DNA of 29,837 bases, taken from NCBI GenBank assembly GCA_013416795.1, contig RQSC01000030.1, positions 355,884-385,720 on the forward strand, written 5' to 3'. Below the pieces are notes generated by a model. The model saw nothing but the letters and a program-made list of their open reading frames with translations. It did not search any database and was not told where the DNA came from. Shown here piece after piece: positions 7,212 to 20,028 of this stretch (the first letter of the stretch is position 1; each line of letters begins with the position of its first letter). The position numbers and the translations under genes were made by a program. The stretch is from Prasinococcaceae sp. CCMP 1430 (Eukaryota; Plantae; Prasinodermophyta).

Positions 7212-7248
7212 NNNNNNNNNNNNNNNNNNNNNNNNNNNNNNNNNNNNN
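7212..7248. other. Assembly gap (37 N)
   Basis: Run of n in the sequence. Confidence 0.99.
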
Positions 7249-7378: not shown

Positions 7379-9742
7379 ATGATGCCCTGCGCCGATCGGC
7401 GCCTCGGTCGCGCGGTGACCGCGTGCGCGTGCTCGCTGGCGGCGCTCCTGGCGGTGTCGGCGCTGGCCTCGCGTGGGGTGAGCGCGCAACCGCTCCCCGC
7501 GGGCAACGGCATACAGGCGGTCATCGACACGCAGTGCGGGTCCCTCGCTTTGGGCGACCACAGCTTGGTCTTCTGCAACGGCAAGGAATACGCCGAGGAG
7601 CACGGCCTGGACGCGCAGACGCTCTCGGTGGCCACGCTCAGCACCGCAGGGGACGAGTCCGAGATCGGCGGCGAGATGATCGTCACCGCCCCCGACGGCC
7701 CCACGGCCGAGGAGATGTGCCTGTGGTGCAACCAGGGGCGCGACGATGGCTCCAACCCGACGTCGCACTACCGCCCGACCTGTCGCGACGTCGTGTCGGG
7801 CGATGCGTTCAACGGCGTCGTGATGTGGGTGGACAACAAGCGCCAGCTGTCGTACTTCGCGTCGGTCTTCGGATCGGATATGTCCTACCTGGAGATGAGC
7901 GTGGCGGTGGCCACCGCGCAGGTCTCCGAGGAGGCTGTGCCGCCCGGCTACGTCGTCTCGCCCGTCGGCGCCGACGCGGTGGGGGTCGATCGCGCAGACC
8001 AGCGCGCGGCCGAGCTCGACGGCCAAGTCACCAGCCCAGCCCACGGGGGCGCCGGCGTGGTCATCTTCAACATCGACACGGGCATTGACTGCAGCCATCC
8101 CGAGTTCCTCAACGCCGACGGGACCGCGACGCGCTGCACGCCCGCGTTCGATCGCTTCGCGAACGCCGAGTGCATCAACAACGGCGGTAGCCAGCCGTGC
8201 ACCAGCGCGCTCGAGTACGCGTGCGCGCAGGACGGCGGCGGCGCACAGCAGTGCGCGTTCGACGAGCACAGCCAGGGCCACGGCACGCACACGGCGGCCA
8301 TCGCGGTCGGCCGCACCTTCGGGATGGCCCGCGACGCCGACGTGCGCGCGGTCAAGGTCTTCGACGGCCCCGAGGGCTTCGGCACGCCCCAGGACGTGCT
8401 CACCGGCATGAACTACGTGGCCCAGATGAAGCTGCTCGACCCGACGAAGCCGATGATCGCCGCGATGAGCCTGAGTGGCACCAAGTCGCTCGCGATGGAG
8501 ATGGCCATCGAGCGGCTCGCTCTGTACGGGGTGACGGTGGTTGTGGCTGCCGGCAACAACTTTCAGGCGGACGCCTGCAATTTCTCGCCGTCGTCCTCGC
8601 CGGCGGGCATCACGGTGTCGTCCATCGACGCGTTCACAGATGGCGTGAGCGGCTTCGCGAACGTGGGCCCCTGCGTGGACCTCTTCGCCGTCGGCTCCGT
8701 CGTTGCGTCCGCGCAGCCCGGCGGCGGCACCACGACCCAGTCCGGCACGTCGATGGCCGCGCCCGTCGTCGCGGGCATCGCGGCGCTGTACTACGGCGAG
8801 TTCGTGGCCGCAGGCGCGCCCATCCCCGACCCGGCGCAGGTGAAGGCCGACCTCGTATTGGCGGCCACCGACGGCGCCATCCCCGACCCGCTGGGCTCTC
8901 CCAACAAGATCGCGTACGCCGTCTTCCCGAACACGGGCGTCTCCCTGCCACCGAGCTCCGCCGGTGGGGGCGAGCCACCCGCGCCCACGCCACAGCCCAC
9001 CGCACAGCCACAGCCCGAGCCCACCGCGCCTCCGACGGCGGACGAGTCCTACCCCTGCACGTCACTCGACTGCAACGACAGCACGCCGCACCCGTGGACG
9101 AAAAGCTCGGATGGCAGCATGCAATTCTGCTACTGCGACAACGCCTGCTTCGCGAACCAGGACTGCTGCGGAAACAGGTTGTCCATCTGCGGCCCCGAGG
9201 TCCAAGAGACGACCGGCAGCGAAGTGCCTGCGCTCGGGACGTGCGCGACGCTGCAGGATTGCGGCAAAATATTGACAAAGGAAGGCGGCGAGCAGTGCGG
9301 ATGCGACGCGGCCTGTGTCCACTACAACGACTGCTGCGAGGGCTTCGAGGCGACGTGCGTGGCGGACGCGCCGCCGCCGTCGTGCCAGGCCGTCGGATGC
9401 GACGCGGGCAAGCAGACCTACGGGGCGGGCGGCGGTCTGGAGTGCTACTGCAGCCCGGACTGTGTGCAATACCACGATTGTTGCTCAGGGGAGACCGGGA
9501 CGAACGGGTACAACCAAGTGTGCAGTGGGTGGGGTCAGGAGAGCGTCGGCTCCGCCGGGGTCGACGGCGACCGCGTGGCCGCCGCCGTGTCTCGCGGCGA
9601 CGACTCGGCCTTCGATGCTCAGCCGGAAACAGCGGAGGACGATGACGGCGGCGGCTTCACCTTCGGCTCGCAATACGTGCAGCATCACGAAGTCGACGAC
9701 GACGCCGTCCTGTCCGGCCTCTCAGGCAAGGCCTATCCATGA
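7379..9742 (+). CDS. Secreted subtilisin-like serine protease (S8A, proteinase K-like) with Pro-rich linker and three somatomedin-B-like repeats
   Basis: Signal-like CSLAALLAVSALASRGVSA; I9-like propeptide AFNGVVMW...SYLE; GVDRADQR; triad IDTG (D 8075), HGTHTA (H 8279), GTSMAAP (S 8750); oxyanion AAGN. C-terminal CxC(D/S)xxCxxxxDCC three times at 9056-9523. Confidence 0.93.
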   Translation: MMPCADRRLGRAVTACACSLAALLAVSALASRGVSAQPLPAGNGIQAVIDTQCGSLALGDHSLVFCNGKEYAEEHGLDAQTLSVATLSTAGDESEIGGEMIVTAPDGPTAEEMCLWCNQGRDDGSNPTSHYRPTCRDVVSGDAFNGVVMWVDNKRQLSYFASVFGSDMSYLEMSVAVATAQVSEEAVPPGYVVSPVGADAVGVDRADQRAAELDGQVTSPAHGGAGVVIFNIDTGIDCSHPEFLNADGTATRCTPAFDRFANAECINNGGSQPCTSALEYACAQDGGGAQQCAFDEHSQGHGTHTAAIAVGRTFGMARDADVRAVKVFDGPEGFGTPQDVLTGMNYVAQMKLLDPTKPMIAAMSLSGTKSLAMEMAIERLALYGVTVVVAAGNNFQADACNFSPSSSPAGITVSSIDAFTDGVSGFANVGPCVDLFAVGSVVASAQPGGGTTTQSGTSMAAPVVAGIAALYYGEFVAAGAPIPDPAQVKADLVLAATDGAIPDPLGSPNKIAYAVFPNTGVSLPPSSAGGGEPPAPTPQPTAQPQPEPTAPPTADESYPCTSLDCNDSTPHPWTKSSDGSMQFCYCDNACFANQDCCGNRLSICGPEVQETTGSEVPALGTCATLQDCGKILTKEGGEQCGCDAACVHYNDCCEGFEATCVADAPPPSCQAVGCDAGKQTYGAGGGLECYCSPDCVQYHDCCSGETGTNGYNQVCSGWGQESVGSAGVDGDRVAAAVSRGDDSAFDAQPETAEDDDGGGFTFGSQYVQHHEVDDDAVLSGLSGKAYP

Positions 9743-15081: not shown

Positions 15082-15181
15082 NNNNNNNNNNNNNNNNNNN
15101 NNNNNNNNNNNNNNNNNNNNNNNNNNNNNNNNNNNNNNNNNNNNNNNNNNNNNNNNNNNNNNNNNNNNNNNNNNNNNNNNN
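15082..15181. other. Assembly gap (100 N, probably of unknown size)
   Basis: Run of 100 n. Confidence 0.99.
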
Positions 15182-15256
15182 GGACGGCCGGCGGCAGCGG
15201 CGACGGCAGCGGCGGCGGCGGCGCATGGCGAGGAGCGGCCGCGGCGGTCGCGCCGC

Positions 15257-16346
<1,090 letters not shown>

Positions 16347-16347
16347 N

Positions 16348-16870
16348 ATCCAGCATAGTCTGCATAGGCGTCTGAAAGTTCAAGAAGAAAGTCCAACCAG
16401 GTTCCAATCCCCACACCAAGACCAAAAAGAAAAAGACCAACACAGAGAATATACTGGGTTTTCCAAAAGTCTGGACTAAACTGGTAGGGAGTATTGAGGT
16501 ACCAGTCCTCCATAAGAGAGTCGACCAGTGGGTGAATACAATGGTAGACACAAAGGGTCCAGAGAAGGAAAACAAAGAAAGTCCCGCATACAAGACTCCC
16601 TTGGGTTGAAAGATCAAAGGAAGAAGAAAGGGTTTGAAGACTTGTACTCTCTCGAAGACTTTCCAACCCAAAAAGAAGAGGGTTCAAAGAGGATTGAAGA
16701 ACATTCGGAAGGGTCGCCCATCCAGTACTGAGAAAAAGAGGTGCCAATCCACCGTAAAGAAAGGGAAGAAGAAGAATCACTCCCGAAATACGCATGGAAA
16801 TTGAAAGAACAGACCCACGTTGGGGACTGTACACAGTAAGGTGAGGAGACAAAGGTCGTTGAAGCTTCAT
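16348..16870 (-). CDS. sdh3: Mitochondrial-type succinate dehydrogenase cytochrome b subunit (SdhC), 174 codons, no stop before the N
   Basis: MKLQRPLSPHLTVY...SISMRISG matches the SdhC RPLSPHLxxY / SIxHRISG signature. Three hydrophobic segments, with His in TM2 (VYHCIH). Confidence 0.85.
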
Positions 16871-16928
16871 ACAAAGAAAAAACGAAAAAAGGCTGACCGC
16901 CTATAGGGAAAGAAAGGGTCTTCTGGGT

Positions 16929-17001
16929 TCAGAGTGACAGGACTCGAACCTGCGACCACTCGGTCCCAAACCGAGCACGCTACCAACTGCGCCACACTCT
17001 G
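16929..17001 (-). tRNA. trnP: tRNA-Pro(UGG)
   Basis: Reverse complement CAGAGTG TG GCGC AGTTGGTA GCGT G CTCGG TTTGGGA CCGAG TGGTC GCAGG TTCGAGT CCTGT CACTCTG A forms a complete cloverleaf. Confidence 0.95.
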
Positions 17002-17039
17002 AAAACACATTGGTTTCCCAAGAAGGAGGTAAGACATTC

Positions 17040-17111
17040 GCGGGCATAGATCAAGGGCTAGATTATCAGCCTTCCAAGCTGAAGATATGGGTTCGAATCC
17101 CATTGCCCGTA
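17040..17111 (+). tRNA. trnG: tRNA-Gly(UCC)
   Basis: GCGGGCA TA GATC AAGGGCTA GATT A TCAGC CTTCCAA GCTGA AGAT ATGGG TTCGAAT CCCAT TGCCCGT A. Confidence 0.95.
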
Positions 17112-17198
17112 GACTCCTTTCATTTTCACACCCACTCTTCTTTCTTTTTGAGTTTCTTTAAACACTCAAAAAAGGTCAAAAACTGAAGAAAAAACCTT

Positions 17199-17284
17199 GC
17201 TTTCCTGGTGGAATTGGTAGACACGGTAGATTCAAACTCTGCTCCCAAGTCTTTGGGGTATCGGTTCGACTCCGATGGGAAGCA
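17199..17284 (+). tRNA. trnL: tRNA-Leu(CAA) with long variable arm
   Basis: GCTTTCC TG GTG GAATTGGTAGA CAC G GTAGA TTCAAAC TCTGC, variable arm CCCAAGTCTTTGGGG, ATCGG TTCGACT CCGAT GGGAAGC A. Confidence 0.93.
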
Positions 17285-17378
17285 CTTCTCTCTCAAAAAT
17301 CCTTCGATTCTTTTTTCTTGAAACCGAGTCAAAAGACTCTTTTTTTCTTTCTTTGGATCTTTACATTTTTTTTCTTCT

Positions 17379-17663
17379 ATGACTCTTCCTTACCCTCGTT
17401 TGCGAACCCTTCGATCTCGATCTGCTCCTGTCTTCCACACAAAAAAGCTTTCTGCAAAACTTGCACGGTTGGTTGAAAGTAAGCGTCTCGGTCGCCCACA
17501 ACCATCCTTTCGAAAGCTCTCTTGGTATAAAGAGCGACTTCAAGCACGTCAAAATGTTCGAGCCTTTTACGGGTGGATGCCAGCAACCTCTCTTGGTCGA
17601 TTGATGAAAAAGGCCCGAGCACATCGACCAACCGCAGGGCCTACCTTTCTTCAAAGTCTTGAA
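17379..17663 (+). pseudogene. rps4: Mitochondrial-type ribosomal protein S4, first ~95 codons only, continuing in frame into MAPKK
   Basis: RKLSWYKERLQARQNVRAFYGWMPATSLGRLMKKA...FLQSLE matches the S4 N-domain (KLSxYxxRLxEKQKxRxxYG...FLxxLExRLD). It breaks exactly before the RLD S4 RNA-binding motif. Codon usage is AT-rich. Confidence 0.85.
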
Positions 17664-18715
17664 GCGGACGGGCCTCCGCCTGCTGCGGAGGGCGCGAGCG
17701 CCGCGCCGGGGGCCGAGCGGTCGCGGGCGGCTGCGACGCGTGCCCCGCCGAAGAGGAGCAACTCCTTCACGGAGCGCAAGCGCAAAGGGGGCGCCTGCCC
17801 GCCCGTGCTCGCCGTGCCGGGCGATGCGGGATTGTTCGACGGGCTCGGGGGCGACGCAGCGGACGGCAGCGGCGCGGGGAGGAGCGCGGCGGGCATGCGA
17901 GCGGCCCAGCCGTTCTCGCTGTCCGAGTCGGGCACCTTCTGCGAGGGCGACCTGCTCATCGGGCGCTTCGGCGCGAGCTTCGGCACGACGTTCGCGCCGT
18001 CGCCGCCGCCGGGCGGCGGAGCGGGCGGCGGCGAGGCGCTGGCGGGCTCCCCGGCTTTTGCGGGCGGGCGGCCCGCGTCGCAGCAGCAGAGCCGGCCGAG
18101 CTCGATGGGCAGCACGCGCAGCGCGCGCGAGGGCTCCATGACGCCCAACGCCGTCGCGACGGGCGCCGGCGCCGGCTCGGTGGGCACGGCGGGCACGCCC
18201 GACGGCGGTGCCTTCGACGTCGCGCTCGACGACCTGGAGACGCTCTGCCTGCTGGGCAGCGGCGTGAGCGGCGTGGTCCAGAAGGTGCGACACAGGCCGA
18301 CGGGCACCGTGCTCGCGCTCAAGAGCGTGCAGATGAACGTCGAGGAGACCACGCGCAAGCAGATTATCCAGGAGCTGCGCACGCTCTACTCGACGTTTTG
18401 CCGCCAGATAGTCGGCTGCCGCGGCGCCTTCTACAGCGACGGCAAGGTGAGCATCGTCCTCGAGCACATGGACGCGGGCTCGCTGGCCGACCTCGCGTCC
18501 GTCGGCCCCGCCCCCGAGCGCGTGCTCGCGCGCATCGCGCGGCAGGTGCTGCTCGGCCTGCGCCACCTTCACAAGGAGCTCGGCGTCCTGCACCGTGACA
18601 TCAAGCCGTCCAACCTGCTCGTGTCGACCTGCGGGGAGGTCAAGATATCAGGTGCGTGCGTGGATGGTGCGCGGGTGCGCGAGCGGGGCGGGGGGGGGGG
18701 GGGGGGAGGGGGGGG

Positions 18716-18770
<55 letters not shown>

Positions 18771-19417
18771 AGAGGGGGCGGATGCCGCGCTGCGAGCGAT
18801 GGCGCGCGCGCCCTCCGGCGCCTGACCTGACGCGAGGGCGCGGCGTCGCTCGCAGATTTCGGCGTGGCCGGTCAGCTGGGGAGCTCGCAGGCGATGGCAA
18901 AGTCGTGGGTTGGGACGGTGACGTACATGTCGCCGGAGCGCATCGCGGGCAAGCCGTACGGCTTCGACTCGGACATATGGTCCCTCGTGCTGTGCCTGAT
19001 GGAGCTCGCGTTGGGCCGGTTCCCCTACCCGCCCGCGAAGGTCGCGCGTGGGCTCGTGCGCGAGCCGCACGCGGGTGCCGGGGGCGACGCGGGCGCGCAC
19101 GCTCGCGCCGCCGTCGGGGGCGCATCGGCGGCTCCGCTGGGCTTCTGGGACCTGATGGATTTCATCGTGGAGAAGCCCGCGCCGCGCCTCGACCCGGCGC
19201 TCTTCTCGCCCCACTTCTGCGACTTCGTGGCGCGCGGCCTTCACAAGGACTCGGGCGCGCGCATGGACGTTGAGGACGCGCTGGCGCACCCCTGGCTCGC
19301 GGCGGTGGCCGGCGAGGCGGACGAGGGCGCCGAGGCGGTCGCCGAGTGGGTCGGCGAGGTGCTCTCCTCGGCCGTGAGCGCCCGCGCGCTGGCGGACGCC
19401 GACGCCGTGTTTGGCGT
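17664..19417 (+). CDS. Plant-type MAP kinase kinase (MKK1/2/6-like); exons ~17664-18651 and 18856-19417+; own start codon not visible, 3' end in gap
   Basis: Docking-site-like RKRKGGACPPVLAV; SESGTFCEGDLLI; LGSGVSGVV; ALK; HRDIKPSNLL. The intron 18652-18855 (phase 1) reconstitutes DFG. Activation loop SQAMAKS (S-X5-S, plant type); VGTVTYMSPERI. Confidence 0.92.
18685..18769 (+). repeat. Poly-G tract in MAPKK intron
   Basis: About 85 nt nearly all G, including an uninterrupted run of about 51 G (18719-18769). Confidence 0.9.
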
Positions 19418-20028
19418 NNNNNNNNNNNNNNNNNNNNNNNNNNNNNNNNNNNNNNNNNNNNNNNNNNNNNNNNNNNNNNNNNNNNNNNNNNNNNNNNNNN
19501 NNNNNNNNNNNNNNNNNNNNNNNNNNNNNNNNNNNNNNNNNNNNNNNNNNNNNNNNNNNNNNNNNNNNNNNNNNNNNNNNNNNNNNNNNNNNNNNNNNNN
19601 NNNNNNNNNNNNNNNNNNNNNNNNNNNNNNNNNNNNNNNNNNNNNNNNNNNNNNNNNNNNNNNNNNNNNNNNNNNNNNNNNNNNNNNNNNNNNNNNNNNN
19701 NNNNNNNNNNNNNNNNNNNNNNNNNNNNNNNNNNNNNNNNNNNNNNNNNNNNNNNNNNNNNNNNNNNNNNNNNNNNNNNNNNNNNNNNNNNNNNNNNNNN
19801 NNNNNNNNNNNNNNNNNNNNNNNNNNNNNNNNNNNNNNNNNNNNNNNNNNNNNNNNNNNNNNNNNNNNNNNNNNNNNNNNNNNNNNNNNNNNNNNNNNNN
19901 NNNNNNNNNNNNNNNNNNNNNNNNNNNNNNNNNNNNNNNNNNNNNNNNNNNNNNNNNNNNNNNNNNNNNNNNNNNNNNNNNNNNNNNNNNNNNNNNNNNN
20001 NNNNNNNNNNNNNNNNNNNNNNNNNNNN
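19418..20028. other. Assembly gap (611 N)
   Basis: Run of n; it hides the MAPKK stop and the start of the next gene. Confidence 0.99.

Follow-up and report, generated by a model that had tools for sequence, protein, structure and literature searches.

The closest described counterpart of the sequence analysed here is the mitochondrial genome of Prasinoderma coloniale (KF387569; Pombert et al., 2013, PMC3873408). In that comparison of five prasinophyte mtDNAs, sdh3 and trnL(caa) are found in Prasinoderma alone; its tRNA set also includes trnG(ucc), and its GC content is about 46% (PMC3873408). The genome paper of 2020 (Li et al., 2020) presents an assembly made with PacBio and NextDenovo, in which the organelle genomes are complete and kept apart, and it contains no mention of NUMTs (PMC7455551). 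Two further kinds of known structure bear on mitochondrial DNA found in a nuclear scaffold. NUMTs appear in an assembly as mitochondrial sequence flanked by nuclear sequence and, when young, are undecayed. Organelle-DNA chimeras and gap-fill errors of draft assemblies are recognizable by an abrupt switch in composition at a gap boundary, by 100% identity to the organelle and by a truncated nuclear gene.

The window considered here, that is, the whole 29,837-nt stretch of DNA that was analysed, from contig RQSC01000030.1 of Prasinococcaceae sp. CCMP 1430, contains at positions 16348–17663 a block of 1,316 nt that can be compared with all three. Its gene set and GC content, judged from the published tables, are like those of the P. 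coloniale mitochondrial genome, of which it would represent 1,316 nt, with its two ends falling within sdh3 and rps4. It resembles NUMTs in being undecayed and flanked by nuclear sequence in the assembly; unlike NUMTs, however, it has one junction that is an N and another that is absent from the contigs of the strain, which show uninterrupted nuclear and mitochondrial configurations. With the organelle-DNA chimeras and gap-fill errors of drafts it shares all three hallmarks, and it differs from them in that the mitochondrial depth was not high in the runs examined here.

Materials and methods

Fourteen sequencing runs of the organism contain 96–97% of the words sampled from window positions 15200–19400. 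Runs were examined as Logan contigs and comprised two DNA runs (X1 and X12) and two RNA-like runs (X15 and X19). Such contigs drop rare variants, and a real junction present at low frequency would be invisible in them. The examined runs may be the data behind the assembly or may come from the same strain, and they do not represent an independent population. Genes and domains were assigned with ARAGORN, Rfam and Pfam, and contigs of wild relatives were taken from TARA Oceans metagenomes.

Results

The block differs sharply in composition from its surroundings, having a GC content of about 45% compared with about 72% in the surrounding nuclear DNA (about 72% also for the whole window). GC fractions of 0.76–0.88 were found up to 16350, 0.30–0.62 over 16351–17650 and at least 0.66, mostly above 0.7, from 17651; GC recovers within 50 nt on either side of 16348–17663. 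Between the katanin p60 gene (− strand) and the MAPKK gene (+ strand) the block holds, in this order, sdh3, trnP(ugg), trnG(ucc), trnL(caa) and a partial rps4. The sdh3 gene (16348–16870, coding part 16349–16870, − strand) comprises codons 1–174 of 190 and is cut at its 3′-end by the N at 16347, by which the last 16 codons are missing. The ORF starting at 16870 on the − strand matches Pfam Sdh_cyt above the cut-off (37.3 bits), and its product is 99% identical to P0001, a 190-aa sdh3 product from TARA Oceans marine metagenome contigs; it is collinear with two of these contigs, L001 and L002, where the gene extends about 50 nt further. All three tRNA genes were called by ARAGORN and matched in Rfam: trnP(ugg) at 16926–17002 (− strand, 66 bits; same gene in L001, L002 and L003), trnG(ucc) at 17040–17111 (+ strand, 68.8 bits; same gene in L001–L003) and trnL(caa) at 17199–17285 (+ strand, 46.5 bits; same gene in L001 and L002).

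The last gene of the block, at 17379–17663 on the + strand, corresponds to codons 1–95 of about 316 and is cut where the nuclear sequence starts, which leaves it short of about 220 codons. Its N-terminal Ribosomal_S4 match in Pfam is below the threshold (19.7 vs. a cut-off of 23), and the full-length homologue of 316 aa in the wild mitochondrial contig L001 gives an S4-domain match near the threshold (21.2 vs. 22.8); judged from these matches, the ORF from 17379 is probably rps4. The GC break and the ARAGORN, Rfam and Pfam assignments agree with the sequence-only reading of this DNA, which had recognized a mitochondrial block of sdh3(−), trnP(−), trnG(+), trnL(+) and partial rps4(+) between katanin(−) and MAPKK(+).

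The mitochondrial origin of the block was evident from two comparisons. It aligns end to end with the wild, Prasinoderma-like mitochondrial contigs L001–L003 (TARA Oceans) at 97.3–99.0% identity. These contigs carry tatC, an rps4-like gene encoding 316 aa, the three tRNA genes of the block in its order and orientation, sdh3, nad4L and atp8. The order and orientation rps4 – trnL – trnG – trnP – sdh3 are the same in the block, L001 and L002, with tatC, nad4L and atp8 (YMF19) as the mitochondrial neighbours. Homology to L001 and L002 ends exactly at 16348 and 17663, and the mitochondrial contigs carry on past both points. Identity to mtDNA, a check proposed together with the first description of the block, was examined against a mitochondrial contig of the same strain, 14,459 nt long and present in the DNA runs X1 and X12, and gave the outcome that had been named there as one of the signs of an artefact: this contig covers 16348–17663 with 0 differences and 0 gaps over 1,316 nt, and its parts outside the block measure 11,204 nt and 1,939 nt at the two ends. 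The alignment with L001–L003 and the identity to the 14,459-nt contig show that the block is derived from mitochondrial sequence, and the combination of sdh3, trnL(caa) and trnG(ucc) at a GC content of about 46% is that of P. coloniale mtDNA (PMC3873408, Tables 1 and 2). In P. coloniale, the mtDNA has a published inverted repeat of 14,364 bp, a length close to that of the 14,459-nt contig, and the block may lie within this repeat.

Runs of N are located in the window at 7212–7248, 15082–15181 (100 N), 16347 (a single N), 19418–20028 (611 N) and 29161 (a single N). Because these gaps are of varied length, the window probably derives from a scaffolded draft other than the published PacBio/NextDenovo reference (PMC7455551); the making of such a gapped assembly is described neither in that paper nor in a mutation-accumulation paper from 2025 (PMC11884799). 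The exact left edge of the block is the single N at 16347, a scaffold gap mark, consequently there is no sequenced junction on this side. The right join, 17663/17664, has no N and lies inside one assembly contig (16348–19417). Alignment of the edges revealed no microhomology at either side of the block beyond scattered matches. At the second single N (29161), DEAD-box-helicase-like coding DNA (..GMGKTAVF..) abuts unrelated DNA of low complexity that is rich in CG and CA. It seems that a single N stands, in this assembly, for a join between contigs that was not resolved.

In both X1 and X12, the corresponding stretch of the window is tiled by three separate contigs, which are 100% identical to it over the matched parts. 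Besides the mitochondrial contig, these are a katanin contig (2,149 nt in X1 and X12), which stops matching at 16346 and continues with 297 nt unlike the block, and a MAPKK contig (5,049 nt in X1, 2,500 nt in X12), which matches from 17664 and extends leftward from there by 1,444 nt that are likewise unlike the block. No contig bridging 16346/16348 or 17663/17664 was found among the X1 and X12 contigs listed, and 79 of the 79 X1 contigs aligned here carry parts that do not fit the window stretch. Thus, neither of the two continuous junctions that a NUMT should have was seen, the left one being an N and the listed X1/X12 contigs containing no bridge. The uninterrupted nuclear configuration, which should be absent if the block were inserted, is represented by same-strain nuclear contigs, one of which extends 297 nt beyond the left edge and the other 1,444 nt beyond the right edge.

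The contig word depth of the mitochondrial and nuclear contigs was 10.8 and about 17, respectively, in X1, and 56 and about 75 in X12; this is a crude single figure per contig, with several bins inflated by GC-rich short matches, and it was used only to establish that there is no spike. The sequence-only reading had assumed high-coverage mtDNA reads and had regarded a depth spike over 16348–17663 as a sign of an artefact. This part of its proposal was not borne out, since in X1 as well as in X12 the mitochondrial contig has a lower depth than the nuclear ones. Poor coverage of the organelle genomes was reported for the JGI libraries of P. coloniale in the mutation-accumulation paper from 2025 (PMC11884799), and the low mitochondrial depth would fit this report if the runs are the same.

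The other part of the proposal, that gap filling with mtDNA is the simplest explanation, gained support from the same contigs: the block is identical to mtDNA, the listed contigs bridge neither edge, and the nuclear contigs continue elsewhere. We conclude that the block between katanin and MAPKK is very probably an artefact of the assembly and not an insertion.

Alternatively, the assembler may have taken up a rare event, which would be either a NUMT allele carried by a subclone of the culture or one chimeric DNA molecule that arose in ligation or library preparation. The clean 17663/17664 join needs a cause at the level of reads or read pairs, which such an event would provide, and as contigs drop rare variants, a minor allele would stay hidden in the data used here. 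However, no positive sign of it was found, the junction shows no microhomology, and a library chimera would be an artefact as well. We therefore consider a rare event very improbable. The biological half of this explanation, a real mtDNA insertion in a minority of the culture cells or in the subculture that was assembled, by which about 1.7 kb would have been deleted and katanin p60 beheaded, has a slightly smaller probability again. If it were true, a NUMT would have been caught within laboratory time; to our knowledge, no NUMT has been described in this lineage.

The left flank of the block, at 15257–16346 on the − strand, encodes the 3′ part of katanin p60 (residues 196–557 of 557 and the stop codon) and forms a contig of its own between the 100-N gap at 15082–15181 and the single N at 16347. 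Pfam AAA, AAA_lid_3 and Vps4_C domains were detected in it, and the N-terminal microtubule-interacting part of a complete katanin p60 is absent from the window. The window katanin is 100% identical over 362 aa to residues 196–557 of P0004, a 557-aa protein encoded by TARA contig L007. This contig of a wild relative matches 15182–16346 at 98.8% and goes on past 16346 for 763 nt more, which contain katanin residues 1–195 and 179 nt of upstream DNA. The N-terminal features of katanin from Chloropicon occur in the same order in residues 1–195 of the L007 protein. On this sequence comparison, the truncation of katanin is to be regarded as a feature of the assembly, not of the organism or its lineage. 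When the complete P0004 was searched against JGI metagenome contigs for a close relative having the katanin–MAPKK empty site in one piece, only relatives of at most 70% identity were obtained.

These data also bear on the possibility that the block is a genuine NUMT of very recent origin that is fixed in the strain. In that case, a double-strand break between katanin and MAPKK would have been repaired with 1.3 kb of mtDNA, and some 1.7 kb of nuclear DNA would have been lost together with the 5′ part of katanin contained in it. The N-free right junction inside one assembly contig and the undecayed state of the block are what a young NUMT would show. A fixed NUMT identical to mtDNA should break the k-mer graph at both edges and, in a haploid clone, leave no alternative nuclear continuation, but the opposite was seen: the X1 and X12 contigs pass both edges into sequence other than the block and the mitochondrial contig is unbroken. 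In addition, the left junction is an N, and the insertion would have removed 195 conserved N-terminal residues of katanin p60, which are kept in the 98.8% relative. A fixed NUMT is accordingly highly unlikely in our judgement, to the same degree as an insertion confined to a minority of the cells.

The right flank contains the MAPKK gene (17664–19417, + strand), the exon of which extends to 18648 and is followed by a GT..AG intron (18649–18852) and by exon 2, running from 18853 to the 611-N gap. The gene has a Pfam Pkinase match, and Tetraselmis MAPKK aligns with it from the ‘SGTFxEGD’ motif on. Removal of the 204-nt intron by splicing is seen in the contigs of both RNA-like runs, X15 and X19. 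A (GGN)n repeat at 18675–18782, within this intron, breaks contigs. The match between the window and the TARA contig L008 begins at 17664, and L008 has just 6 nt preceding that point.

The MAPKK reading frame is open to the junction at 17664, with no ATG before 17895. The ATG at 17895 is not conserved in L009, a 75% relative, and a D-site-like RKRK..VLAV motif is found in frame upstream of it, which suggests that the MAPKK start may lie to the left of 17664; this ATG does, however, align with a Met of Tetraselmis MAPKK. Between 17664 and 17895 the window differs from L008 by one synonymous and three non-synonymous changes, which are too few to judge the coding status of this part. Both nuclear genes had been described as lacking their 5′-ends; this holds for katanin, reduced to residues 196–557 of 557, while for MAPKK the absence is shown for upstream DNA only.

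L008 and a 301-nt X15 RNA contig both start exactly 6 nt before window position 17664 (L008:1–7, window 17658–17664), at which the nuclear sequence of the window begins. This shared start is possibly a transcription start, or possibly reflects an upstream stretch at which older short-read assemblies break. Two peculiarities were observed in the relatives. L008:290–303, corresponding to window position ~17947, contains a 14-nt tandem duplication in the conserved MAPKK ‘SGTFCEGD’ region, which represents a frameshift or a scaffold error. In L009 (~90–330, window ~17950) the codons for SGTFCEG are directly followed by an apparent, AT-richer intron, at a point where the gene in the window reads through.

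Two ORFs read through the edges of the block, namely 15257–16870 on the − strand (sdh3–katanin), which runs through the N at 16347, and 17379–18830 on the + strand (rps4–MAPKK). The frame of the left one rests on an N whose true length would be about 1.7 kb minus the block. Agreement of frames is expected by chance in about one third of cases per side and in about 1 in 9 for both, and long ORFs exist in every frame of DNA with 72% GC. The in-frame fusions therefore carry no weight. Of the earlier statement that both mitochondrial ORFs are apparently in frame with the nuclear remnants, the openness of both ORFs was reproduced; the left one, however, crosses the N, of which that statement makes no mention, and the agreement has the chance expectation just given. 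The 483-aa rps4–MAPKK read-through product was not on record in an exact look-up, which thus lends the fusion no independent support.

An expressed chimeric gene should yield a transcript across the mitochondrial–nuclear junction, and none was found among the X15 and X19 contigs. The 301-nt X15 RNA contig covers 17664–17958, has 6 unlike letters in front and contains no rps4 sequence; no RNA contig of X15 or X19 (Logan contigs) lies on 16348–17663. The chimeric transcripts for which RT-PCR had been suggested are thus not seen in these runs, and the idea of a very recent NUMT creating two chimeric genes, raised as the alternative in the sequence-only reading, is not supported in view of the N at the left junction, the normal 5′ part of katanin in L007 and the X15 contig devoid of rps4. 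That a functional transfer is under way, with expressed sdh3–katanin and rps4–MAPKK chimeric genes, is hardly credible despite the two open read-through ORFs, as the left ORF crosses an N of uncertain true length, frames agree by chance in about one third of cases per side in 72% GC DNA with its long ORFs in all frames, sdh3 lacks 16 codons and rps4 about 220, rps4 sequence is missing from the X15 RNA contig at 17664, and the block has no RNA contig in X15 or X19.

Discussion

The results are best accommodated by a misjoin in the draft assembly. According to this explanation, the block stems from the mitochondrial genome of the strain itself, the strain being P. coloniale or one near-identical to it, and was placed by the assembly process where a nuclear scaffold had a gap. 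On the real chromosome, the first 195 codons of katanin would lie beyond 16346, followed by an intergenic and upstream region and then by MAPKK. The 297-nt katanin continuation ends about where L007 has a (GCC)n run, from which we infer that the true distance between 16346 and 17664 is roughly 1.7 kb. The same run, near the end of the continuation, would also be the reason why the X1 and X12 contigs fail to join. The missing stretch is presumably very GC-rich, with the (GCC)n run in it, and the draft assembly may have failed there.

The 1,316 nt of mtDNA would then have been attached to the MAPKK contig, with a single N standing between them and the katanin contig. Such a misjoin could have been introduced by a gap closer, by a scaffolder placing a mitochondrial fragment, or by a chimeric read. 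Both chimeric ORFs would be by-products without biological meaning.

The main value of these findings lies in the quality control of a draft assembly. Taken at face value, the block would lead to a false annotation, in which an early-diverging green alga appears to have undergone a fresh organelle-to-nucleus transfer, to possess two chimeric genes and to have a truncated katanin. With the misjoin, the genes of the organism would be normal and the draft wrong at the position of the block. NUMT counts, gene models and claims of organelle transfer based on this assembly should first pass a junction-continuation test, which asks whether the contigs or reads of the strain span a junction or lead away from it into different sequence.

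Elsewhere in the window, ARAGORN predicted a tRNA-Ala(cgc) gene of 97 nt at 8911–9007 (− strand) in nuclear DNA, which Rfam did not report at its gathering score and which may be either a nuclear tRNA gene with an intron or a false call.
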